A stretch of DNA of 63,458 nt, counting the filler, from Octopus bimaculoides (Eukaryota), in the NCBI RefSeq assembly GCF_001194135.2. It is 4 parts of 4 records of this genome, joined end to end, with 100 filler letters (N's around TTAATTAATTAA, not from the genome) between each part and the next. Parts side by side here need not be neighbours in the genome. Positions count along the whole stretch, not along the records: positions 41,837 to 63,458 come from NC_068990.1; 3 more parts are not named here. One strand, given 5' to 3'. Positions 41,737-62,932 of the stretch are shown here, one piece after another. Each line of letters starts with the position of its first letter. Within the stretch, counting starts at the first letter, position 1. The notes under the pieces were generated by a model. The model was not told the origin of the DNA and searched no databases. It saw nothing but the letters and a program-made list of their open reading frames with translations. The position numbers were made by a program, and so were the translations under genes.

Positions 41737-43848
41737 NNNNNNNNNNNNNNNNNNNNNNNNNNNNNNNNNNNNNNNNNNNNTTAATTAATTAANNNNNNNN
41801 NNNNNNNNNNNNNNNNNNNNNNNNNNNNNNNNNNNNTAAAACCAGTCCATTGCCGTTGGATCTGTTAACGTATTCCCCTTATATCATATCCATTTAGTGT
41901 ATGGAAGCAGCAGAAAATATTGTTATTTAATATAAAGTTTGTTTTGCTGTGTTGATTGCAGACATCTGTATGCACCAGTTAACTGATTAAACTTTAGTTA
42001 GTAATCGGTTGCATGGGAACTCTCATTTCATTAATATACAAGTTACCACTACTGTAAGACCTGCAATTCAACTTTACTAACCCTCCTCGTCTACATCAGT
42101 AATTTTTGTTTTTTTTAAGTTGGTTTTATGTCTTAATCTATTATTCTATTTTCCTATATGCTTACACTTAAAATTTATCTATTGTTTTTAAACCGCAATA
42201 ATTCACACGATATTTTTAGCAATTGAGTTTTATAACAGCTGCTTGCTTTTCTCGTGTTTAGACTTTTAACATCGAGTTTCTTATGCAATAGCTTACAGTA
42301 AGTTAGTAGTCAGTGAAAAGCAGTGCATTGGTATTTAGTGGAAAATTCGCATCAGCTACTACCACCTATCTGGTTATTAACAAGTGGGATTATTTATTTT
42401 ACTAGAGATCTGTCTGAAATAGCCTAAGGGAAATGTGGAGCCAACATGCACTACTGCATTTAGTTAACTTGCTTCAGCGCTTATCTTTTTAAGGATTTAA
42501 ATATAATTGATAAATAGTTATGTCTGTTGGCATTCGATGAGCTTTAATAATAATACTAATCACAATAATAAGTTGTAGAATTTAGTGAAGTCTGGTTCTG
42601 ATGAGATACACATAGTTGGCTTCAACTTGGTATTTTAAATGGAAAACAGAGAAAGTAGCTTGCATTGAGGGAATAATAGAGTGTAGTAACTGTTGGTCTG
42701 TGTTTGTTATCAGCATGTCTTTCTTCATATGTAATCATTGTAATAATAGTCAGTGCTGCTGACTGAGATTTTTTTTTTTACACGTCTGTACAACCACTTG
42801 CAGTGATGTGATATGTTGACCAAAGACATATTCTTTTCAGTTCATCTACGTATGTTATGTGTGACTATACAAGAACGTGCGTTTGTGCATTTTGTGTGTG
42901 TGTACTCACGCACTCACATATATTTATTCACATGTTACGCATGCACATGAAAAAAAAAACATGCCCATATTTTCGAGCACACGCATACATACACCTGTAT
43001 ATATAATACGCATGCACACACACACATGCATATATATACGTATGAGCGTGTGTGTACTTGTTCACTAGATTAGAGATTCCAGCTGTCTGCATATGTAGCT
43101 TCGTATAATTGTGAATATGCCTTGTAGAAAAGTTAACTTTATAATATTGCAGTTAAATATTGATGTGGTGTATGTTAGGAAAGCATTTAAAAAAATATGC
43201 GTGTGTGTCTGACGAAGAAAAAAATGTGCCGTTTCGATAATTTTTTAAACCTATCTAAACACGTTTGTTACATTAGCCTCATTAGTAAACTAATGATTAA
43301 TGAATTGTGTGAAAGATTGTGCTGATAGAAAATGCGTTCTGAATTCACTGCGAACGGTTGTTTTGTGGGTGGTTATTCAGTTGCTACTTCAATATCTGCT
43401 TTCTTTTCCGATATTGTTATATCTGATCTTATGACCCTTTCCTGTTCATATTTCCTTGATTCGTGACACCTGTCACCCTGCTCACAAATCTAAATTAATA
43501 AAAGAAGCAATAATGTTAATTTATACATTTGACAACATATTACATACATCACGCGTTATTATAAGTCTTGCTTGGACCTTCAGTTTTTCCATAGCAAATC
43601 ACAACAAACTTCAAAACTCAACAAAAACAAGGCACCAAGAATTATCATAGACTACTCATTGATCACTTGGACCCTTGTCTAATACACAACGTTTACTTGG
43701 TCTCTCAACCTGTTAGGAACAGCAGCCAATTAACTTCAAATTACATCCTATAGTCTTACTCTCAGAAAAGACGTTAGCTCATGTAACCCTACATGCATAT
43801 CAGAAAGACAATATAGTCATGGTTAGAACGCTTTTGATCTTGGGTCTG

Positions 43849-43966
43849 TTGGATCAGGATTGACTTGAAGTTAAGCCACGACAATGGTGAAACCTAAATA
43901 CTCAAAATTGGATCAGGATTGACTTGAAGTTAAGCCACGACAATGGTGAAACCTAAATACTCAAAA
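43849..43966. repeat. Perfect 59-bp tandem duplication
   Basis: ttggatcaggattgacttgaagttaagccacgacaatggtgaaacctaaatactcaaaa twice. Confidence 0.95.
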
Positions 43967-45626
43967 TAAAAGATCATTTGAACATGCGAGGAGCCCAATT
44001 TGCAGTTGCTACAAGTTCCAACACATACAGTCTCTTTTTACATATAGCCATCCCCAACACACTATTATAAACTTGAAATAGCAACCAAATTTTCCTCACA
44101 TTTAATCCTATCGTCTAGAACAGACGGTCAAGACGTATAAAGCTGTTCTGAACATATACAACCCGAGGGAAAAAAACTAAGTGGTTATGGTTAGAGTGTC
44201 TTTGATTATATGTTTGCTCATTCCGGGTTAGCCTGGAACTAAATAATAACAACTACATTATCCTAAGAACACTACCATTCCCATACACACCAAAAATAGC
44301 GGCATCGTTAGCCGCATTAACCCTGCCACTATATTGGGATATGTGCACATCGCATGAGATTGGTGCAAATCAGGGTCACATAAAGCACACCCCAATAATG
44401 GACTACCTTAGCCATTCCATTGACTGACAAGACATCAAAACATAAGTGTTAAATGAGAATTAATAAATTAAAAATTAAATTTTCTTGTGAGCCAGAACCG
44501 TGCTAAATTATAGCCGAACAATATTAAAATGTTCGAGTAACAAGAAAAAAATGCATGTTTTCAACAATTTTTTTTTGTTTATTTGTCTTCTAAGCTGTTA
44601 TGATTTACCATTTGCATGGCATGGGAAAAGTAACAAACACACTATAGTAGTCCTTTCCCTTGGTACCCTAACTTTGCTTAGTATGTTAATGGTCGTTGAT
44701 CAGATCCTAGAGTTCATGAACACGATGGTTATGAGTTTGAACTCTGACTAAGTCCACTTTGCTCATAACCACTGTAACCACCATCCGAACCTAGAGACGT
44801 ACAGGAACAGACTGGCGAAAATGCGATGTGTAACCTAGGCTTTCATTGGCAACCTTTTACGAGAAGCAGGCCACAAGAGACGTGGTTCATCATTATAAGC
44901 GGGTCGCATTATTAAAGGAATTCAAGGTAGATTTTCGTTAGGCGTGCCATTCATTAAGTTCCGCGGGCCGTAGGTTACCCGTGACGAGTCTAAACAGTCA
45001 TACTTCACACCATACTTTAAATCACTGTATGCCTGTGTATACAGTCCCCTATTAGGTGGAAGTTTCATATATCTGGAAAACTGGATCTGAGAGTCGCATC
45101 TAGTTTCTCAACTACTTAACATCCTTGAGATAGCAGTCAAATCTTCTTTGTTGTGTTTAAACAGACACACAGTGGAAAATATAATCCGGTTTACACAATG
45201 TCTAAAAAAAGATAGGATGGGTCACATTGGAGTGCTTTTGATCACAGATTTGTTCGATCGTGGCTGGCCTGGGGCTAAACTATCAATCTATCTGCATACT
45301 TTCTCGATCGTGGCTGACCTTAGGTTAAACAGCAATCCAAATTTATAAATATTTTCTTCATTGAGAGAAACGGGAACGCCCCTCTCGGGTTTTTCCCCAT
45401 TTTAAATGCCATTTTATTTTTATATTTTTCTCTGGAAGTATCTTTTGAGAAATCCAATCAACTCAATTACTTGAAGTAACTTTAAAGAATCGACTTATTT
45501 TCTTTTAGTTATAAGCTTTTTCGAACTCAAGTAATTTTTTTTTAATGATTTAACCCTTTATTAGCTAGTTTTTGTTTTGCAGAATTTGTATATATAAATA
45601 TATGTATGTATAAAACGAATACATAG

Positions 45627-45673
<47 letters not shown>

Positions 45674-46565
45674 ATATATACACACACACACACATATACA
45701 TATACGTATATATACACATACATATGAGTCTGAGTATTTGTGCGCGCGCGCATTTTGTATGTATAATGTATTTAATGTGTATAAACTATATGTATATATA
45801 TGGGGGAGTATGTACTCTAATATGCGCGTATGTTTTTTTTTATAACAGTTTTATTTGCAAAAAGCTTTAATATAAAATCATAGTTATATTAGGAAGTATT
45901 TAGAAGGAAGTTGTGTTAAGTTCATAGCATTTTTTACACATTTATCTTCTAGTCTAATAAGCTTTCTAAGTAAATATTATTATTCAATTTGAAGTATTAT
46001 TGAAATAAAAATATGATTTAAATGAAGAAGATTTAATGTTCACAATAAAACACTATTTTTTTCCTTGTTTTGTCCGTTGTCTTAGAGACGATTTTCAAGT
46101 ATCAGTTCTTACTTCTGAGGAAGAACACACGCGCACGCATTAGCTTGTGTGTGCGTGTGTACCGCACGCGCGCGTGTTCCTTTAATTTTTACACGTGCAT
46201 ACATAAACCAGGTGCACATGCATATATGTGTGTATATGTGTGTGTGAGAGAGAGAGAGAGGGGGGAGAGAAATGTTAAAAATATAATTTAGAAGTGTAAA
46301 GTGTTTAGCGATATCTTTCAAGTTCTAGTTTTGATTTTGTCACAGCTAGAGAATGTAGCCTAGTGTTTTCTTGTTTTGTTTTATTTTGTTTTTTCCTTCT
46401 TCTCTCTTAAAATATCACTGACAATTCTTGCAACTCTTTGAATATACTCGTTTTTATATATATATGAAAACATTTTGAGGACTGGCTGTGACGAAGGAAA
46501 AATCTAAGAACTTTTAGGTTTACAGGTAATATTTCCAACCACTGAAATATATTTTAACTTAGAAA

Positions 46566-46615
<50 letters not shown>

Positions 46616-47411
46616 ACCCTTTGTAAGGATCGAACCATTCATCCTTTGCTTACCGGTAAAACATGTTTCAGAATGCACAAAAGTTTGGGTTCACTTCTTA
46701 TTGCCGTGTAAGACTGACTGCTTGTTTGTTCAGTAGCAAATGTTCTGATATTACTAAGTATAAAGACTCCCCTATTGATCTGAAATGGGAACCTACAACT
46801 GATTTAATGTTTGTTTGTTGCATTTATTTCACGTTGACTGATATGTATTGTGTGTGTGTGTGTGAATCTTTGTCTTTCTACCTTTCAACAATAATCATGA
46901 GGATAATGACTTTAAAAATACACCTTTTTCACGCTTTATTTTCATGTGTCAATAGAATGAAAGAACAATTCTTTTTAAGCGTCTTAATTATTTTAGTTTT
47001 CTTAAACCATTTTTCATACAATATGTGTATATATATATACATATATATATACATATAAGTTATAAATGCCGTCCGGCTCCGGTGGCATACTTTTCATTAT
47101 TACTGGTTAATAATACCTTCACCTGGATAATGTTTGGACTAGTTAACACTTCTAGAAACTTCCTAATGTATTATTATATTACCTGATTTACAAAGAGAAG
47201 GGAAACATTGAGATCTATCTTGTCTTTTTCATTCATTTAGTAATCTTAATTACTGTAATTTTAAAGAATGTCCAAGTCGCTACTTTTCTTGTTACTATAT
47301 TTTATATAACTGAAATAGATATATATTTTAAAATAATCATTAGCTGTTTATTGAATTGAGTAAATTGGTGAAGATTTGTTTCTTGACACTGTATTAGAAG
47401 GCATTTTAATA

Positions 47412-47450
47412 GTTTGTTTTGTTTTCTTTCTGTATTTGTAGCTTCAGCAG
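47412..47450 (+). promoter_or_regulatory. Splice acceptor of the zinc-finger coding exon, with alternative nearby CAGs
   Basis: gtttgttttgttttctttctgtatttgtAG (AG at 47440-47441) followed by cttCAG CAG aATG. Implies an upstream non-coding exon; the ORF-track start at 47419 lies inside this tract. Confidence 0.7.
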
Positions 47451-47451
47451 A

Positions 47452-48954
47452 ATGGAACTGGGGGAGACGTCTGCCATCTCTGAAGACAAAAAGTATACAG
47501 TGCAGCTGGTGACCAAGTTCACATGTAAATATTGTGCCATGCAATTTGCTTCGTTGCGGGATATGCAGCTGCATGTACTATCACATACTCACGGTAAAAC
47601 ATTGCATAGTTGCACTGTGTGTGGAAGGTCTTATACAACTCCTTCGAAACTCCAACGTCACGTTCGTGTACACAGTGGTGAGAGACCCTACATGTGCAAT
47701 TTGTGTGGGCGGCGTTTCACACGTTCTGACCATGTCAAACAGCACATGAAGGTACACCAGCCACACAGACAGAAGAATATGTGCCGTATCTGTGGAGTGC
47801 GCTTTGCTCGTTCTTCTCTTCTTGGTAGTCACCTTCGTCGACACAGCATTCTTCTAATTCATGTTTGTCGACGTTGTGGTGAGGGTTTCCAGGAAGCTGA
47901 AGAGCTGGATCTTCATAGAAAACTGCATAAAATAAAAAGTAACTTACGGCCGAATGGACGACGACGTAGCCGTGGAGCTCCTGTAGATATGTCTGCATTA
48001 ACGAGCGGACCACCTGATGATATCAACCCGAAAATACCATCTGAAGGGAAATGGGTAGGCTGTGCTAGATTCTGTGTAGCACAGGTATCTACCAGCAATA
48101 GTAAGATTATCCGAATGTCAGCATCAGAAAACGAAGATCACGAAGGTGATGAGACTTCAAACAAAAACGAGATAGAGTTCATTAAGCAGGAAGTACAGTA
48201 TCCTAGTATGGAATCTGAAGAACAACAGTCTTTATCATCTGAAAGAAGTAACTATCAGATGTCTATTTCTACCAGCTACACCTTGGCCAAATCTTTAGTA
48301 GACAATCAATTTAGAAGGTTTTCTGCTGAGTCAGAGAAAATGTTTATTCTTCCAAGTAGTACAGAGGCAAATCAGGGAATATCGTTACGAAAGTCTGAAT
48401 CTGTAAACAACCAGTTTGGTGGTGCTGTCGTACCAACAGAGCCGTCATCTTGTCCAGAAATGTTGCGAAATTCTCTGTCTTCACCTGAAATTTCTCGACA
48501 AACACTGTCATCACCAGAAATTTCTCAACAAAGATTACCATCACCAGAGGTTTCTCATGAAACATTGAGTGCACTTAAGGCTGTGATTAAACGAGAACCT
48601 GGCTGTGCAAAAGAACAAGATTCTCAATATCCAATGAGTTTACTTGCAAGAAACTCTGTAGCTATGTCCCAATGTCCACCATTCATGAAATATCCAGAAG
48701 ATCTTTCCCAACAAACACAAATTCGACAGAGAAATATTTCTAGCCCAGCATCTGTAAATGGTAAAAGGCTCAGTAAATGTGACCATTGTGGAATGTGGTT
48801 TGAGGATTTTGGAATATACATGCTCCATAGTAGCTTACACTCAGCTGATGAAACAGATCCTTTCACTTGCAGAAAATGTCTAAAAAAGCTTGGAAACCGA
48901 TTAGAATTCATGGCTCACCTTGTTTGGCACTTGGATCCAGAGCTCCATATTTAA
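47452..48954 (+). CDS. C2H2 zinc-finger transcription factor, 500 aa: five N-terminal fingers plus a C-terminal Ikaros/Hunchback-like dimerisation finger pair
   Basis: Uninterrupted ORF. ATG at 47452 has strong context (A at -3, G at +4) and follows a polypyrimidine tract and AG acceptor. Fingers at 47518-47928: CKYC..HVLSH, CTVC..HVRVH-SGERP, CNLC..RSDHVKQH, CRIC..HLRRH, CRRC..HRKLH. Basic NLS-like RPNGRRRSR. C-terminal CDHCGMWFEDFGIYMLHSSLH-SADETDPF-CRKC..NRLEFMAHLVWH. Stop TAA at 48952-48954. Confidence 0.93.
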   Translation: MELGETSAISEDKKYTVQLVTKFTCKYCAMQFASLRDMQLHVLSHTHGKTLHSCTVCGRSYTTPSKLQRHVRVHSGERPYMCNLCGRRFTRSDHVKQHMKVHQPHRQKNMCRICGVRFARSSLLGSHLRRHSILLIHVCRRCGEGFQEAEELDLHRKLHKIKSNLRPNGRRRSRGAPVDMSALTSGPPDDINPKIPSEGKWVGCARFCVAQVSTSNSKIIRMSASENEDHEGDETSNKNEIEFIKQEVQYPSMESEEQQSLSSERSNYQMSISTSYTLAKSLVDNQFRRFSAESEKMFILPSSTEANQGISLRKSESVNNQFGGAVVPTEPSSCPEMLRNSLSSPEISRQTLSSPEISQQRLPSPEVSHETLSALKAVIKREPGCAKEQDSQYPMSLLARNSVAMSQCPPFMKYPEDLSQQTQIRQRNISSPASVNGKRLSKCDHCGMWFEDFGIYMLHSSLHSADETDPFTCRKCLKKLGNRLEFMAHLVWHLDPELHI

Positions 48955-48983: not shown

Positions 48984-50057
48984 ATTTATTTTAATGCTTT
49001 TTGAAATTGTGTTTTTTTTTTAATTACTTATTCAGATTCAAAGATCTTCAAATTTTGGGGGGATTTCTGTTTTTATTTTTTTCCCTGCTCAGTATCTAAT
49101 TAATTTTCTCTAAAGCAACATAAAAGGGCAAAAAGTAGTAAAAAAATGTTAAAATCTTTTGAAGTATATTTGTATGTTTTAATTTTGTTTGTTTTCCTCT
49201 AAAGAAAAAAAAAGGAAAACATTGAAATATGCTTAAATTTGTACAAAATGAAATGTGGCTGTATGTGTGTAAAAAGAGAAGAATAATTACTTTTAAAAGA
49301 TTTAGAAATGTTGAAAGCTCAATTTCTTTTATTAATAGTTCTTTTAGGCTCTTTATGTTGATTATTAAAATTCTAATTTAAAAGATGACACTCATTCTTA
49401 AGTAAAAAGTATATGACAGTTAAATGTTAAATATGCAAAAAAAACATTGAAATTGGTAGCCAAGAATGTGTGAATGACCGGGCAAAAATTTCAAAACCCC
49501 TTGCTTAAAAGAAAAAGAAAAAAATTATTAAAATATTGAATTTCATATTTGCCTTTAAATGTTTGTATTTTCAATACAGACTTTGTGACTGTTGCTGTTT
49601 TTTTATTTATACTTCTTGTTTTTGTTTTATATTTCCTCTCTCCCACTCTCACTCACTCACTCACTCACTGTCTCTGTCTGTCTCTCTTTCTCTCACTCTT
49701 TTATACAAAATATTTTTTTAAATGTTGTTTCAATGTAATTTTTGAAATGATTTTGTGAATACTTTTAGAAATAGTTTGTTATTTGCAAAGGGCCTATTGC
49801 CAGAATGTGCCAAATTCCTTGCTCTGCCAGTGAGATAAAAGACTGGATTGTTAGACTTTTACACTGTTGGCAGAACTTTAGCAAATATTCTTGCTATTTT
49901 GAAATATGAGAATGGATGTTTGTTTGGTGTTACCAAACTTATACATTGGGTCCAACTGTCCTTAACTTACTACAGTAACCTGAAGTTGTGGATTTCACTA
50001 GCATAGCCATAGTATAGAACTTCAGATTATAAAAAAATGAATGATGATGATGATGAT

Positions 50058-51216
50058 AATTCTTTCTAGTATAGGCACAAGGTCTGAAATTTGTGAAGAA
50101 GGTGCTAGTTGATTACACTGGCCCCAGTGCTCACCTGAGATTTATTTTATCAACTCCAAAAGGATGAAAGGTAAAGTAAACCATGGCAGAATTTGAACTC
50201 AGAACACGAAACCAGGAGAAATACCACTAAGCATTTTATCTGTCATGTTAATCAGTCTTCCAGGTCACTACCTGATGATGATGATGATGATTTAAAATTT
50301 TGGTACAAGGCTAGCAAGTTTGAGGGATAGGGTAAGTCAATTACATTGACCCCCAGTGCTCAGCTGGTACGTATTCTGTCAACCCCGAAAGGATGTAAGA
50401 CAAAGCTGAAATCAGCAGCATTTGAACTCAGAACGTAAAGTCGGAAGAAATGCCACCAAGCATTTTATCTGGCATGTTAACAAATCTGCCAGCTCACCAC
50501 CTCAATAATAATAATAATAATAATAATGATAATAGTTTCAAATTTTAGCCCAAGGCCAGCAGTTTTTTGGAAGGGGCCAAGTCAATGAAATCAACCCCAG
50601 GGCTGAACTGTTACTTATCTTATCGACTTTAAAAGGATATAATACAAAGTTGACCTCACCAGTATTTGAACTCAGAGTGTAAAAACTGACAAAATTTTGC
50701 TAAGCATTTTGCCCAGTGTGCTAAGTAATAATAATAATTAGTTCTGATTTAGCAAGCAGTTTTGAAGGTTAGGGTTTAATTGATACCCTTGACTCCAGTA
50801 TTCAACTGGTACTTTCTTTTATTGATCCTGAAAGTACAAAAGGTACAGTTAACTTCAAGGATTTGAACTGAGAAGGAAGCATAACTAAATCAATATCACA
50901 AGGTACTCTTTTTAGAGCTCTAATGATTCTCTCACCCACTGCTCTAAATAATAATAATAATAATAATAACGGTTTTAAATTTTGCCACAAGGGCAGCCAT
51001 TTTGGGGGAGGGGATGAGTTGATTACATCAACATCCCCCCCCCCCCNNNNNNNNNNNNNNNNNNNNNNCCCCCCCCAGTCATCAACTGGTACTTATTTTA
51101 TCAAGGATGAACGGCAAAGTCAACCTTGGCAGAATTCGAACTCAGATCGGAGCGACGGGCGAAATACTGCTAAGCATTTCGTCCAGCATGCTAACTATTC
51201 TGCCAGCTCGCTGCCT
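50058..51216 (-). mobile_element. Tandem array of five family B SINEs
   Basis: Five ~200-bp copies (starts about 50058, 50291, 50535, 50741, 50971) separated by (GAT)n/(AAT)n. Confidence 0.85.
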
Positions 51217-51229
51217 TCTAAATAATAAT

Positions 51230-51780
51230 AATAATAAGTATTATTATTGTCATTATTGTTATTATCTATTCTTTTCATCTCAGGTTTTGTTGGAACTCCT
51301 GGAGTCTTGCATGCATAGCAGGCTTGCTGCCTGCAGCCTACTGTATATCATGCTATCTGTTCTTTTCAACTTATACTTTCCTAATTATTCTGGCTATGTC
51401 AAGGAGGCAAATCTTTTGTAACAGTTCTACTGGGCACTCTATTTCAATTTCCTTTATATTCCTCTTGATGCTTTCTGATACTGTCTCCCAAGGAACCAAC
51501 AATTATTAGCACTTTCTTCACCTTCTTCATTTTCCATAGCCAGGCTATTTCATACTTAAGTAGATTGTATATATATATCTATTTTTTGACTTCCTTCTAG
51601 ACTATTTGTGAGTCAAAGGGACATGCAACATCAACTATATAGCATGTGGTGAATCTTGTCCACCACCACTAGGTCCGGTCTGTTATGCTCTAGCACCTGA
51701 TCTGTTTTTTGCAAGTCTCTGACTCCACCATTCTCTACGGGTTGTGTTCATATCATGTCTTACCTCTATCTTGCTCCCGC
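51230..51780 (-). mobile_element. RLE-type (R4/Dong-like) LINE 3' fragment, degenerate
   Basis: DQVLEHNRPDLVVVDK..CYIVDVACPFD..LKYEIAWLWKMKKV..IIVGSLG..ELLQKICLLDIARIIRKV*, with the PD..D motif at 51673-51678. Contains stops and frameshifts; (TAA)n on both flanks. Confidence 0.8.
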
Positions 51781-52548: not shown

Positions 52549-53039
52549 GTAAGCATGATTCAACAGTACTGTCATTCATTTATTCTAGAAAATCTAATAA
52601 AAGAAATCTAATTTGCTGTTGTTATAGGAGCAGACTTAGGAAGCATTGCTTTCACACACACACACACACACACACAGAAGTGTATGTGTGTGTGTGTGTG
52701 TGCATGAGAGAGAGAGAGCAAGAGATAGAAAGAGAGAGAAGTCTATATAATAATAATAGTATAGCTGCAAGTTGTAAATGACTTTTGGCCATAGAATTCA
52801 GTGAATTATGAAAATGTTCTGTTGCCTTCAGAGTCTCCTCTGCTTGACACATGGTTGGTCAAGTAGAGAGAATGTTGCACAATTGGTCAAGGAACCCCAG
52901 TTCCTATTCTTTTGTTAACTTTATTGTTTTGTATGGGCAACATTCTTAACTCTCAGTTAACCTGTCGAATTCACCTAGCTATAAAATATGTATCACAAGA
53001 TAATATAATTCATAATATTGTTTACTTGTGAAGTAGGCA

Positions 53040-54960: not shown

Positions 54961-55018
54961 AAGCAAGTAAAATCAAGAACTCTTAGAAGTAAAAAAAAAT
55001 AGCGATAAATGATAATGA

Positions 55019-56308
55019 TGCTTTCAAATTTTGGTACCAGGCCAGCTTGTTTAACAGAAAGGGGCAAGTAAATTACTTCAACCCCAGTACTTGACTGGTA
55101 CTTATATTATCAACCCCGAAAGAATGAAAAGCAAAGTCAACTTGGTAGAATTTGAACTCTGAAGAAACGCCACTAAGTATTTTGTCTAACATGCTAACAA
55201 TTCTGCCAGCTCACCACCTTAATAAATAATCCCTTCTACTAAAGCCACAAGGCTTGAAATTTAGTGGAGAGGAGGCTATCATTTATATCGACCTCAGTGC
55301 AACAGAATGAAATGTGAAGTCAGTCGTGTAGAATTTGAACTTGGAACATAGAAAATGGACAAAACACCACTAAGCATTTTGTCCAACATGCTAATAATTC
55401 AGCCACCTTTCCACCTTCACCACCTTAACAATAATAATTATAATAATAATGGTTTCAAATTTTGGCACAAGGCCAGTAAGTTTGAAGGATGGGATAAGTC
55501 GATTACATTTAGTAAGTTGATTACAGCTGGAACTTATTTTATCAGCCCCGAAAGGATAAAAGCAAAGTCTACCTCAGCGGAATGTAAAGACATGAAATGT
55601 CGCTAAGCATTTTGCCTGGCAAGCCAACAATTCTGCCAGCTCGCCGCCTTAATAATGATGATGATGATGATAATCCTTCCTAATTTTGGCACAAGGTCAG
55701 CAATTTTGATGGGAGGGAAGTTGATTACATAGACTCCTACCTATTTTACCAACCATGAAAGGATGGAAAGCAAAGTTGATTTTGGTGGAATTTGAACTTA
55801 AAATGTGAAGCTGGAATAAATGCTGCTAAGTATTTTGTCCAGTGCAGTAATGATTGCCAGCTTACTTCCTTAATAGTCCTTCCTGCTATAGGCACAAAGC
55901 CTGAAACTTTGGGGAAAGGGGCTAGTCAATTAGATTGACCCTAGTGCGTAACTGGTACTTATTTCATAGACCCCAAAAGGATGAAAGGCAAAGTCAACCT
56001 TGACGGAATTTGAACTCAAAATGTAAGGATGGACAAAATGCCGCTAAGCATTTTGTCTGGCATGCTAACGGTTTTGCCAGCTTAGCCCCTTAATAATAGC
56101 ATTTCTAATTCAGACACAAAGCCAGAAATTTTGATGTAAAAAAAAAGTGTTTGTTGATATCATCAGCCCCAATGATACACAGGTACTTTACGTTATTGGC
56201 CCTGGAATGATGCAAAAGCAAAGATGACTTTGGTGAAATTTGAGCTGAGAATGTAAATAACTGGATTGAATACTGCTAGGCATTTTGTCCAATGTTCTAT
56301 CAATTCTG
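55019..56308 (-). mobile_element. Tandem array of six family B SINEs
   Basis: Copies start at about 55019, 55230, 55451, 55675, 55877 and 56101, separated by short (AAT)/(GAT) runs. Confidence 0.85.
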
Positions 56309-56370
56309 CAAACCTTTGCTATAATACTATCAAGAGTTATTATTATTTGGTGTCCATTGCTAGTACATAC

Positions 56371-56454
56371 ATCATCTCTGACTAAATAGAGATGAGAGTA
56401 ATCAAGATCAAATATTTGTGATCCATGGATTTTAAGTTCCATTGTAAAGTTATT
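56371..56454 (-). CDS. Candidate 84-nt symmetric exon on the minus strand
   Basis: tttttttctcctctacatgtcAG acceptor, GTATGT donor, open frame NNFTMELKIHGSQIFDLDYSHLYLVRDD. No homology recognised. Confidence 0.25.
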
Positions 56455-56876
56455 CTGACATGTAGAGGAGAAAAAAATTCTATAGTATTTTATTGCTCAA
56501 TTGATGTATTAAAAAAAAAAAAGCAAGAACAAAAAATAACACTGACAAATTAACAAAAAAGACTTCTTAAAAACAGGAAAAAAATATCACCATCATACTT
56601 TATATAATTTTTTTATACTCACATGATTTAGTTTCAAAGAGTTCTTTCAGCAGAATAGTTTTGAGTTCATAATTCAACAATTGACATTATGCTGTGGCCT
56701 GTTAATCTCCAAATCTCTTTCCATTCTTACTAAGCAGTCAAGTAGGTGAGATAAGAGAGAGAGGGGATGGGGAGAGAGAGAGAGAAGGGCCTTGTTGTCT
56801 GTAATATTAACACTGAATTTTCTCAGTCAACAGTGGTATAGAATGGTTAGTTAGAGAATTTATTCTTGAACTAATA

Positions 56877-57785
56877 TTGGTTTCAAATTATAGCACAAGG
56901 CCAGCAATTTCCAGGGAGGGGCTTTGTTGATTACATCGACTCCAGTGTTCAACTCGTACTTATTTCAACCCTCCCCCTTCCCCTGAAAGGATCAAAAGCA
57001 AAGTAAATCCTGGTGGCATTTGAACTCAGAATGTAAAGTCAGAAGAAATGCCGCTAAGCATTTTGCCCAGCATGCTAATGATTCGGCCAGCTCGCTGCCT
57101 TAAATTCTTACAACAATATTAACTATTTTTTTAACAAAATATTGTATCATATATATTTGTTCCAGCCCTTTATGTTCTGAGTTCAAATCCTGCCAGAGTC
57201 AACTTTGCCTTTCATCCTTTTGGCATCAATAAAATAAAACGTCTGTCATGTGCTGAGGTTGATGCTATTGACTAAATCTACCCCCTCCCAACACACATAC
57301 ACATACACACAAATTCCAGGCTTTGTAATGATGCTAGAAAATCATTAAGAGCAGTGCATTGGCATAATTGTTAGAGCTTATGGCATTTAGTCTTGAGTTC
57401 ATATCCTATTGAGGTCTACTCTGTTTTTCATTCTTTCAGGGTTTGATAAAATAAATTTCCATTCAAGGACTGTGGTCGATGTAATTGACTAATCCTCACC
57501 CCTCAAAAGTGTTGACCCTGTGCCTAAACCAGAAACCATTATTATTATTATTATTATTATTAATCATCAACGGCGAACTGGCAGAAGCATTAGCAAGCTG
57601 GGCAAAATTCTTAGCGGCATTTTGACCACTTTCTTTATGTTCTGAGTACAAATTCTTCCAAGGTTGACTTCACCTTTCATCCTTTCGGGGTCGAAAAAAT
57701 AAATACCAGTTGAACTCTGGGGTCAATGTAATTGACTTACTCCCTCCCCCGAAATTGCTAGCCTTATGCCAAATTTTGAAACCAT
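56877..57785. mobile_element. One minus plus three plus family B SINEs, head-to-head
   Basis: - copy at 56877-57101; + copies at about 57165, 57340 and 57570. Confidence 0.8.
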
Positions 57786-57902
57786 CATCATCATCATTAT
57801 TATTATTGTATGTTCAGCTTTTGCTTTGTATTTGTACAAGTTGACTTTAAGTCTCACCCAGAGACCTCAACAGACAACAAGTTAGAAGATTATTATTATT
57901 AT

Positions 57903-58433
57903 TGAGTGAGATAGCAGTGCATGCCATCAAAGTGACACTGGGGTACAAATATACGAAACCCAATATACCCATCATGACTACCTGTCTGATAAGGGTACAC
58001 CAGGCACATGCATCACAACCACATGTGCACAACATGGTGACCTTATATCAAGATAAACATCGCATGACCTTGCAGGTGGGGCCCAGTTAGAATTTTCTTC
58101 AGGTTGAATAGCCCATCCCACTCAAGAGGACTCTGAATGATGAACAAAACACCCATATTTCCAGAGGTGAATTATTCAAACCCCAAAGACTTCCTCTCAA
58201 CACATGGCTATGATGCTCTCCCACTACTTCTGCTCGTGATCAGAGATGCATATATCGTCAGCCACTAAGGGACATGATCAACTGGTTAAGTTTAAACAAC
58301 TGACAAGCAAATCTGTGGTATTGGACAGAATATTTGCTGTAGCCCATCTTTTCTACCAAGATAAAAATATGGTACATAATAAAACTTCCAATCAGTTAAT
58401 ATCAGAAGCCATGAGAGCCACTTCCTGGTACTG

Positions 58434-58437
<4 letters not shown>
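57903..58437 (-). mobile_element. ~550-bp interspersed element, copy 2
   Basis: Same sequence and same microsatellite flanks as 17131-17688. Confidence 0.8.
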
Positions 58438-58469
<32 letters not shown>

Positions 58470-58476
58470 TATTATT

Positions 58477-58770
58477 AAGTCTGTGAGCTGACAGAATAAT
58501 TAGCACACTAGACAAAATGCTTAGCAGCATTTTGTTTGTCTTTATGCTCAGAGTCCAAATTCTGCTTAACTTTTCATCCTTTCAGCACCAGCTGAGCAAT
58601 GGGGTCAATATAATCAGCAAGTCACCTACCCTGGAATTTCAGGCTTTGTGCTATAGTAGAAACGGTATTGGCTCAATGAAATAAGTAACAGTTGAACATT
58701 GGGGTCAGTGTAATTGACTAGCATCCTCCCCCAATATTGCAGGCCTTGTGCCTATAGTAAAAAGGATTAT
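58477..58770 (+). mobile_element. Family B SINE with duplicated 3' part
   Basis: gtgagctgacagaataattagcac..tttcatcctttcag, then two ggggtca.tgtaat..ggcYttgtgcYtatagta tails. Confidence 0.65.
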
Positions 58771-61042
58771 TGTTATTATTGTAGTAGTAGTAGTAGTAGT
58801 AGCACATATGGTTCAAGAAAGAGAGCAAGTAATGCAGCATGAACAAACGTTGAAGATGGTAGAAATGTGTGACTCAACAAACTTTATGCTGTTGTGCTGG
58901 AGTTCTGTTGTATAAATCGGTGGGTAACCCCAGGTAACTCTGGTGCCATGGTAGAAGGGACCAAAACATCTACAGAGCTGCTTCACTGCCTGATGTGACA
59001 CTGATTCCTGTACTCAGAAATGGAGTACAGCAGCACCCCTCAGCACTCTTGTGTTTACCCTAAAAGCTAAAAGTAGTAGTGGTGGTTGTGGTCATTGTTG
59101 TCTTTAGTTATGTCTGTTTCTAGCCTAAATTCAAATCTACCTTGGTCTAATGTGTCTTTAATCATCTCTTCTGAGTCAATGACACATGCCAATCAATTAT
59201 TGTACTCCATTACATCAAGTGTTCCCTCTCCTCATATATATATAGTATCATGCCCATGTTGGACATCTATTTCCTCTTGCACTTACACTCAGTATATTCT
59301 ATCATTTCCTCTTTGTCACTTTCTGAAATATCTTTTTAAACAGGTATATGATATTATAAGATATGTCATTCCTCCTCATCAGTATGTACAAAATGGATAA
59401 ATTATTTCTGTGGTCATGTTTTGTTTCATATTTCACTGTGGGCATTTTATTCTGTTTATGGGCAAGTCAGCCAACCTCAATTTTTAACTTCTGGGCAAAG
59501 TTGTCTATGACAAATTGATGTCCTCTACAGTTGGAAAATTATAGAACTAACCATTTGAATTCTTGTTTGTTTTGTGGGATGATTGATCTACCTACTAAAG
59601 CTCTGTACCTCTTACTACACATTAGACTGATTTTGAAGTAGATTTACTTGTGTGTTTAAGACATCTTTATAGCTATAGTTCATCTCATCTGTATTCTTGA
59701 TTTCAGATCAACTGTTAATACTTTTCAATTTGATTTTCAGCATATTTTGATTGAATGGCAGTGATTCTAATGCCAAACATCTGTTTGGACTGATTTGGTT
59801 TATGCTTTGCTCGTAAAGAATGTAATACACTTGCAAAATGTTATGCTATCTAATCACATTTTTGGGTGTATGTCATGCCAATACTTTACTCTTTTCATCA
59901 GATGTTATTTAAAAATTGTGTTTAATCATTATTGAATAGTCCTAGTTTAACTGTGCCCAAGTTGACAATGACTCAGAAGCTGTTGTGTAATTTATAAGTT
60001 CATTGCACTCTGATAAGTGTTGTCTTAGTCATTTCATACTCCAACAGGTAGAAGCATTCCATTTGAAAGATTGATGAAAATAAAGTTAGGAGTTATTTCT
60101 CAGAAGACTTGTTTTGACCCTTTTAGATACCAACCCACCTAAGAACAGCATTGATTCCATGATACAAGCTTCCCATTTTAAGGTGATCTTTTAAAGTGAA
60201 CCTAAATTTGGATGAATTCTTGACTTATGTTGAAATCTTAATTTATGTTGCAGATTTATGACAAAATTATTTTACTAAATCCTTCATTATTTTTCAAGGC
60301 AGACACATTAACACGCCTAGCAAAATGTTTAGTGGCATTTTACCCATCTTTACGTTCTGTGTTCAAATTCCACTGAGGGTGACTGTGCCTTTCATGCTTT
60401 CGGAGTCAGTAAAATAAGTAACAGTTGATTAGTAATTGACTCAGCCCACCCAAAATTCAAAATTAATATTAATTGAAACAGAGGCAGTGTATTTCAATGG
60501 ATATACATATGGTAATGAATGTGTTATGGTTCTAGTTCCATCTATGTGTGTAGAGGCCACATGTATAGATTTAGTTGTTTCAACAATGATTGGAAGATAT
60601 TAACCCTTCACTATTCGGATATTCTGCCAAATGTAATGTTTATTTATTCACATGGTTTTGAATTAATCATGCATTGTCTCTTAGCTTTGAAATTTTGATG
60701 ATGTGATTGTATATTTTTAGTATGACATTGTAAAGTAGATGTGAAAGCCCAAATCTAACCCGGCTCAAATGACTTGATCTAACCCGGATCTAACCTGGGT
60801 CATATGGGCGAGGGGGTCTGATGTTGAAAGATCTGAAACACTGTGAGATCTCCAAGACATTGCTGATAATTCATCTCAGAGCATCTGTGAAATGTATCTT
60901 AAAACTAGAATTAACAGTTTGGTGTGTATGGATGAAATTTAGTCTCAGGACAACCAGCTTTCATTTTTATGATAATTTTGTTTTTAATTTAGCTATCAGC
61001 AATAATAAAGATAATAGTGATGGTTTAGTAATATTTCACTAT

Positions 61043-62815: not shown

Positions 62816-62932
<117 letters not shown>

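Follow-up and report, generated by a model that had tools for sequence, protein, structure and literature searches.

A candidate hunchback/Ikaros-like transcription factor gene of Octopus bimaculoides and the mollusc family to which it belongs

The window analysed here is a 63,458-nucleotide stretch of Octopus bimaculoides DNA (assembly GCF_001194135.2), assembled from four parts, of which the last 21.6 kb (41837-63458, from NC_068990.1; all coordinates count along the whole window) contain a gene for a protein with seven C2H2 zinc fingers. This octopus gene is intact and strongly constrained, and its entire functional coding sequence lies within one exon. It probably encodes a sequence-specific transcription factor of the hunchback/Ikaros-like (HIL) class, which would bind DNA through its second and third fingers (F2-F3) and dimerise through its two terminal fingers (F6-F7). 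The HIL class is defined by a DNA-binding cluster together with a C-terminal finger pair for protein-protein interaction (bioRxiv 10.1101/2022.06.20.496913; PMC5393059), and the octopus protein is built in this way, with fingers at residues 25-159 and 443-493 of 500 and 283 mostly disordered residues between them. Judged from its sequence, the gene represents an apparently mollusc-specific, cephalopod-expanded subfamily of this known class, on which no paper was found; the RefSeq labels 'ztf-16-like' and 'Eos-like' indicate that the resemblance had already been picked up automatically.

In blood and neurons, Ikaros and Hunchback serve as textbook examples of factors governing progenitor competence and temporal identity. 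Their orthology and the age of their dimerisation module are unsettled, and the mollusc family described here, together with three sister architectures, adds lophotrochozoan data to this question. The five cephalopod paralogues, with their frozen DNA-reading helices, also offer a tractable test for the repeated origin of combinatorial dimer networks.

The gene and its product

The sole long open reading frame of the 21.6-kb piece runs from 47419 to 48954 on the plus strand, with an ATG at 47452. The features of the gene and its finger modules are as follows.

47415..47441, + strand: polypyrimidine tract and AG splice acceptor directly 5' of the ATG, sequence TGTTTTGTTTTCTTTCTGTATTTGTAG followed by C
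47452..48954, + strand: complete coding sequence, 500 aa plus stop, single exon, putative hunchback/Ikaros-like zinc-finger transcription factor
47524..47586, + strand: finger 1 (aa 25-45), contact residues S/R/D/L, scaffold nearly invariant, auxiliary finger
47611..47757, + strand: fingers 2 and 3 (aa 54-102), canonical linker HSGERPY, putative DNA-binding core
47611-47673, + strand: finger 2 (aa 54-74), contact residues T/S/K/R
47695-47757, + strand: finger 3 (aa 82-102), contact residues R/D/H/Q
47782..47928, + strand: fingers 4 and 5 (aa 111-159), non-canonical linkers QPHRQKNM and SILLIHV, predicted local distance difference test score (pLDDT) 87-94
47782-47844, + strand: finger 4 (aa 111-131), contact residues R/S/L/S
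47866-47928, + strand: finger 5 (aa 139-159), acidic contact residues E/E/E/L
48778..48930, + strand: finger pair F6-F7 (aa 443-493), 9-residue linker SADETDPFT, Ikaros-type dimerisation module and putative protein-protein interface
48778-48840, + strand: finger 6 (aa 443-463)
48868-48930, + strand: finger 7 (aa 473-493)

The nearest database protein, at 99% identity, is the Octopus sinensis 'zinc finger protein ztf-16-like isoform X2' (P0001). Its N-terminus reads MD followed by SFSRMELGET, from which it follows that two codons and two nucleotides are supplied by a short upstream exon, either coding or 5' untranslated region (UTR). The 'MD' exon of isoform X2 was looked for in 41837-47451 and was not found there; it lies outside the piece. 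Exact look-ups of P0001 and of the octopus protein in an assembly index gave no match. The Argonauta orthologue is likewise single-exon (L001, 10001-11524).

The seven fingers fall into two groups, F1-F5 at aa 25-159 (47524-47928) and F6-F7 at aa 443-493 (48778-48930). A preliminary description of this stretch had put five N-terminal fingers about 280 residues from a C-terminal two; the gap is 283 residues, and the strings that it quoted (CDHCGMWFEDFGIYMLHSSLH, the SADETDPFT linker, CRKCLKKLGNRLEFMAHLVWH, TPSKLQRH and RSDHVKQH) are all exact. A Pfam scan of the protein returned generic C2H2 models only. In an AlphaFold2 model made with a 22-sequence alignment, aa 21-165 and 430-500 are ordered, and pLDDT is below 50 at 166-198 and 212-429.

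Both finger modules are frozen by selection. Compared with Argonauta, the coding sequence as a whole has a ratio of nonsynonymous to synonymous substitution rates (dN/dS) of 0.045; dN is zero both over the 165 codons of the finger array (dS 0.93) and over the 65 codons of the C-terminal pair (dS >2), and the linker between array and pair has a dN/dS of 0.12.

The C-terminal finger pair is of Ikaros type

Profile comparisons and signature motifs both class the C-terminal pair as specifically of the Ikaros dimerisation type, as had been proposed from inspection. A protein search with the Ikaros C-terminus yielded 14 short fragments, with no Hunchback, TRPS1 or ZTF-16 among them, and these Ikaros-family C-terminal fragments provided a profile of authentic vertebrate Ikaros pairs (A3). 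Aligned by hhalign with the pair profile of the octopus gene's family (A2), it gave a probability of 98.4%, a P of 9.5e-15 and a score of 69; either profile aligned with the family's own F1F2, F2F3, F3F4 and F4F5 pairs gave control scores of 24-37 and P values of 1e-4 to 7e-8.

When A2 was used in an exhaustive HMMER search of 1.84 billion proteins, 24 matches were found at E<=1e-30, and every examined one of these belongs to the octopus gene's family. A second tier comprised matches of 52-77 bits in a single stretch, at the extreme C-termini of proteins with other finger arrays, a range that generic zinc-finger proteins attain only by summing 7-20 stretches. We refer below to the octopus gene's own family as A, and to the families of the second tier as B, C and D. 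Queried with the pair alignment of 65 columns, a word-indexed protein collection gave 10 candidates and no matches.

A hidden Markov model (HMM) built from the vertebrate Ikaros pairs alone was also run on 1,900 domains of 289 fetched proteins. The top 47 of these domains are all terminal pairs of families A-D and of related unnamed proteins, and mollusc terminal pairs rank first; pairs bearing the signature motifs have a median of 27 bits, whereas the 99th percentile of generic pairs is 19.6 bits. The test is conservative because the background set is enriched for fingers resembling the query.

Three motifs—F-x-D, the DPF linker and [DN][RK]x[ED]FxxH—were scored in the adjacent finger pairs of the same 289 proteins. 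Of the 1,763 pairs situated over 30 aa from the C-terminus, F-x-D is present in 89, the DPF linker in three and [DN][RK]x[ED]FxxH in two. All three occur jointly in 94 of 244 C-terminal pairs, as against two of the 1,763; both exceptions are Ikaros-type terminal pairs of family B with a longer tail, leaving none among about 1,760 ordinary pairs. The co-occurrence of these motifs, noted in the preliminary description, thus goes beyond chance. The octopus pair carries all three, including the hydrophobic helix in its first finger: helix positions -1/2/3/6 are D / A, S or G / M, I or L / L in the family and D/V/M/I in Ikaros, and a hydrophobic residue at each of positions 2, 3 and 6 is seen in only 1.1% of 2,100 generic fingers. 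In the second finger, positions -1/1/2/3/4/6 are N/R/L/E/F/A, and in Ikaros D/R/Y/E/F/S. Modelled alone with AlphaFold2, the pair is predicted to form a compact unit (pLDDT 83.9, predicted template modelling score 0.66). The Pfam two-finger model of ZNF451 (PF23108) was considered as a classification and set aside, its match being weak (E 0.0046) and below the cut-off.

The N-terminal array is not specifically Ikaros-like

The recognition helices of F2-F3, TPSKLQR and RSDHVKQ, are invariant across the family in the 22-sequence alignment. They had been described as unlike those of Ikaros, and database comparison agrees: the best relatives of the F2-F3 core are generic fingers of the KRAB-type, ZBTB, EGR, WT1 and KLF kinds (among solved structures ZNF568, Aart, PRDM9, ZBTB24/7A/20, CTCF, ZNF410, HIC2, EGR1, WT1 and KLF4), and the Ikaros N-terminal chain 8d7z_C takes rank 60 (65.5 bits). 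By inspection, too, the helices differ from those of Ikaros, and the array as a whole is not specifically Ikaros-like. Because the array is not of Ikaros type, the protein did not pass as an orthologue of the Ikaros family (IKZF1-5). Matches outside molluscs in a full-length search are generic zinc-finger proteins, which cover roughly one quarter of the query with 27-36% identity.

Read with the canonical recognition code alone, F2-F3 form a putative base-reading core with a G-rich target; F5, being acidic, is unlikely to read bases.

A mollusc family expanded in cephalopods

Proteins with the same five-plus-two architecture were found in all four mollusc classes sampled:

Cephalopods: Octopus, Argonauta, Acanthosepion
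Bivalves: Sinanodonta, Mytilus, Pecten, Argopecten, Mizuhopecten, Crassostrea, Saccostrea, Dreissena, Mercenaria, Mya, Mactra, Tegillarca, Pinctada
Gastropods: Haliotis, Gigantopelta, Patella, Babylonia, Nucella
Chiton: Liolophura

The preliminary description had suggested that the factor might be specific to molluscs or to cephalopods. The first holds, in that all members with species names are molluscs, and the family looks mollusc-restricted on that basis, many database members being unnamed; the second does not, since a chiton, gastropods and bivalves have the family as well.

An alignment of 22 full-length members (A1) spans both finger modules. Its invariant columns cluster in F2-F3 (the helices and HSGERPY) and in the pair (C, C, F-E-D, L-H, L-H, F-x-C, K-C, K and E-F), where the zinc ligands and signature residues are the same in all 22. 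The automatic names of the members conflict—ztf-16-like, PRDM10-like, EVI1-like, myosin-G-like, su(Hw)-like, ZNF148, Eos-like and sal-like—as expected of a family without a characterised orthologue. Such best-hit names mislead across species, and a single family name would correct the annotations. Literature searches yielded no publication on the family in either molluscs or cephalopods.

The Haliotis gene is interrupted by a 770-bp intron, with F1-F4 on one side and F5, linker and pair on the other; this F4/F5 intron has been lost in cephalopods. Other molluscs have one copy each among the named matches, and cephalopods have five paralogues, four of them arising through a cephalopod-specific expansion. 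In a neighbour-joining tree of conserved blocks (about 230 columns), four cephalopod paralogue groups form one clade with 98% bootstrap support, within which the octopus gene and the P0010 group are sisters, again at 98%; the fifth paralogue, 'Eos-like' (P0034/P0035), falls outside this clade. The five share the same F2-F3 helices, and in three of the four other paralogues, which were compared, the terminal pair is 58-80% identical to that of the octopus gene. The annotated C-terminus of one paralogue from Octopus vulgaris, P0039, stops inside the second terminal finger (…KKLDYSILNEFF); this may reflect a natural isoform lacking a full pair, of the kind described for ZTF-16a, or an error in the gene model.

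Other proteins with an Ikaros-type terminal pair

The named proteins of the second tier are all molluscan. Family B is found in Haliotis, Physella and Liolophura (P0140/P0165/P0143), one Physella isoform being named 'ikaros family zinc finger protein-like'; its array has three fingers and starts RPHRCEVCQRSFREVATLRKHEQLH, and it has an extra conserved tail, VKYPHTIPNY. Family C (Pomacea, Sinanodonta and Potamilus; P0192/P0195) has the array ACRYCGKTFSQAGYIKAHERLH plus three or four further fingers, and family D (Sinanodonta; P0202/P0209) an array of about eight. All three share with the octopus family a terminal pair of the same type at the extreme C-terminus, whereas their N-terminal arrays are unrelated.

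The terminal pairs of families B-D score 52-77 bits against the octopus family's profile and 27-48 bits against the Ikaros-only HMM. On the latter, families C and D reach 35-48 bits, compared with 22-32 bits for the octopus family, which is therefore not the best mollusc candidate for an Ikaros orthologue. A hemichordate protein (P0155, Ptychodera) has an Ikaros-type terminal pair on yet another array. One 133-aa public-database entry, P0179, is a synthetic construct consisting of an SV40-type nuclear localisation signal, a chimeric Pegasus/Hunchback pair and an Ikaros-type pair, and scores 59.9 bits against the mollusc pair profile.

Proposed mode of action and alternative explanations

For an HIL-class transcription factor, we envisage that F2-F3 would contact bases, with fingers 1, 4 and 5 modulating. 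The terminal pair would not bind DNA, since hydrophobic residues replace the polar or basic ones of DNA-reading fingers, and it may mediate both homodimerisation and heterodimerisation with the other cephalopod paralogues. Dimers would then bind paired sites, as Ikaros-family dimers do, a suggestion made because the paralogues retain the same F2-F3 helices. These helices, together with the 58-80% identity of the pairs, make the paralogues the most plausible heterodimer partners, and more likely ones than Hunchback. The preliminary description had raised the possibility of heterodimerisation with, or retargeting of, Ikaros/Hunchback-like proteins. Heterodimerisation with Ikaros or Hunchback seems a priori unlikely, retargeting of Hunchback included, because the pairs of Ikaros, Hunchback and TRPS1, according to McCarty and colleagues in 2003, reportedly homodimerise without cross-dimerising. 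In the disordered middle, SUMO-type K-x-E motifs, Ser-Pro repeats and, in octopods, a PEDLS string like that with which Ikaros binds CtBP (all described below) suggest recruitment of co-repressors and regulation by modification.

Several observations weigh against this interpretation. The prediction of a DNA motif has the canonical recognition code as its only footing. The octopus pair is a divergent copy, placed 110th by the Ikaros-only HMM with 22.6 bits, below three or four generic pairs, and it is set apart less clearly than its family taken together; plain HMMER against the Protein Data Bank (PDB), whether run with the pair, its profile or indeed the Ikaros pair itself, fails to separate them from generic fingers. 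A PDB search for a solved Ikaros-type terminal pair gave none (2ma7, from Eos, did not match as a C-terminal pair), and a Foldseek comparison of the modelled pair with the PDB gave nothing at E<=0.001. Nor is the spacing that of Ikaros, which has a 7-residue linker and H-x5-H: SADETDPFT has nine residues, the last finger reads H-LVW-H (H-x3-H), and hhalign inserts a 2-residue gap in the linker when A2 and A3 are aligned. Because Drosophila Hunchback and mollusc families B-D vary here too, this deviation is a subfamily trait and not a core feature.

Some of these points would suit a multi-finger protein of the ordinary kind, with C-terminal fingers that bind DNA or RNA and a convergent or superficial resemblance to Ikaros: single-sequence HMMER does not set the pair apart, its score overlaps the top of the generic range, and both fingers have the regular spacing C-x2-C-x12-H-x3-H. 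The profile-profile score, however, is 7-10 orders of magnitude better than the controls, the three motifs coincide only in terminal pairs of Ikaros type, the contact positions of the pair are hydrophobic or acidic, and the pair sits at the extreme C-terminus in every family; we consider this explanation very improbable. A true protostome orthologue of Ikaros (or Pegasus), its DNA-binding fingers diverged past recognition, would share with the octopus protein the plan of four or five plus two fingers and the F2-F3 linker H-S-G-E-[KR]-P; it would also fit the second terminal finger, where N-R-L-E-F stands against D-R-Y-E-F in Ikaros and is unlike the GPVGLFVH of Drosophila Hunchback (seen in P0179), the PEDLS of octopods and the RefSeq name 'Eos-like' of one paralogue. 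Such orthology is nevertheless distinctly unlikely in our view, given an F2-F3 core no nearer to Ikaros (rank 60) than to ZBTB, EGR, WT1 and KLF, at least equally good candidates in families C and D (35-48 against 22-32 bits), and named members that are all molluscs.

The preliminary description favoured domain shuffling, by which an Ikaros-type terminal pair would have been grafted onto an unrelated array in the mollusc lineage. The same kind of pair does occur on at least four different mollusc arrays (families A-D), and the hemichordate P0155 has it on another. But the five-plus-two plan is already fixed in chiton, gastropods, bivalves and cephalopods, so that any graft is ancient and its junction is no longer detectable; the one intron of Haliotis falls between F4 and F5 and not at the boundary of array and pair; and divergence of the array after gene duplication accounts for the same pattern. 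Shuffling appears unlikely, and an intact, constrained gene for a dimerising, sequence-specific HIL factor remains the interpretation that we prefer.

Beyond the single gene, we suggest more tentatively, and with some doubt, that molluscs radiated the Ikaros-type pair onto at least four arrays, and that the coleoid expansion to five paralogues, in which the base-reading helices are identical and the pairs nearly so, is an independently evolved Ikaros-like network of homo- and heterodimers. If so, a combinatorial dimer network would exist in the lineage whose nervous system is the most complex among invertebrates, the dimerisation pair would be an ancient bilaterian module, and the nearest relatives of the vertebrate Ikaros pair would survive in lophotrochozoans.

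Comparison with known systems

With the Ikaros family (IKZF1-5) the octopus protein has in common the combination of an N-terminal array with two C2H2 fingers at the extreme C-terminus, and the presence of several paralogues per genome. In both, the first finger of the pair has the form C-x-H-C...F-x-D, and its helix carries Asp at -1 and hydrophobic residues at 2, 3 and 6; the linker closes with DPF-x-C, and the second-finger helix is [DN]-R-hydrophobic-E-F-x-[AS]-H. They differ in the linker (seven residues in Ikaros, nine in octopus) and in the last finger (H-x5-H in Ikaros, H-x3-H in octopus). The octopus array has five fingers, with the recognition helices TPSKLQR/RSDHVKQ where Ikaros has QKGNLLR/RRDALTG, and is no closer to Ikaros than to generic fingers. 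Finally, the octopus family is molluscan and not deuterostome, and in cephalopods its coding sequence is a single exon.

A hunchback/Ikaros-like family with the Caenorhabditis elegans members ztf-16, ehn-3 and hbl-1 was reportedly described by Large and Mathies in 2010. These nematode genes have the same plan, an N-terminal or central DNA-binding cluster and a C-terminal pair, and the name 'ztf-16-like' of the octopus orthologue is an automatic best-hit label; the nematode proteins differ in finger number.

A distinct hb gene is to be expected in molluscs. The first terminal finger of Hunchback resembles that of the octopus protein in its F-x-D and hydrophobic helix, whereas the second terminal finger of the Drosophila protein (KCDGPVGLFVHMARNAH, seen in P0179) is without the R-x-E-F helix common to the octopus protein and Ikaros. 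Hunchback, too, has two separable finger domains, of which the C-terminal pair dimerises (PMC5393059).

Short motifs of the disordered middle

The region between array and pair contains the following short motifs.

48049..48075, + strand: KWVGCARFC (aa 200-208), short conserved motif, GLAKFSLGPQP in non-cephalopod molluscs
48178..48192, + strand: FIKQE, hydrophobic-K-x-E, SUMO-consensus-like motif (a functional role would be by resemblance)
48475..48564, + strand: three in-frame 30-bp repeats, LSSPEISRQT / LSSPEISQQR / LPSPEVSHET, with Ser-Pro sites
48583..48597, + strand: VIKRE, second SUMO-consensus-like motif; [AV][LVI]IKRE is conserved in the cephalopod paralogues
48694..48708, + strand: PEDLS (aa 415-419), a string identical to the Ikaros CtBP-binding motif

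The first of these coincides with the only ordered island of the linker of about 260 aa: in the AlphaFold2 model, residues 201-210 (pLDDT 83), with a short beta strand, stand between flanks below 45. The model also places extra short strands at aa 434-442, directly before finger 6. Tandem Repeats Finder describes 48475-48564 as three copies of period 30 with 80% match, and this Ser-Pro repeat is conserved in Argonauta and in P0003. PEDLS, the CtBP-binding motif of Ikaros (PMC5393059), is confined to Octopus and Argonauta and is not conserved in the cephalopod orthologue P0003 or in the paralogues.

Sequence surrounding the gene

An Rfam scan of the 21.6-kb piece gave no match. Non-coding blocks conserved between Octopus and Argonauta at 76-84% identity are located at 41930-42036, 42175-42440, 43056-43118, 52549-52654 and 52752-52911; in both species the largest of them, that at 42175-42440 (79% over 297 bp), precedes the ATG by about 5 kb. 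These blocks may mark a promoter or 5'UTR exon as well as 3'UTR or enhancer elements.

On the 3' side of the gene there are dense clusters of an interspersed repeat of about 230 bp resembling a short interspersed nuclear element, at 50040-51260 and 55000-57135 (+ strand) and, inverted, at 57168-58790 and 60298-60428. Its many diverged copies, 60-87% identical and in both orientations, are each followed by an (AAT)n/(GAT)n tail. A 22-N assembly gap is present at 51047-51068. In the upstream intron or intergenic sequence, a 59-bp unit is perfectly duplicated in tandem (43849-43966, 100% identity). Microsatellites (TA)47, (AC)n, (CAT)12 and (TC)58 occur at 45589-45680, 46565-46615, 58434-58469 and 62816-62932, respectively.

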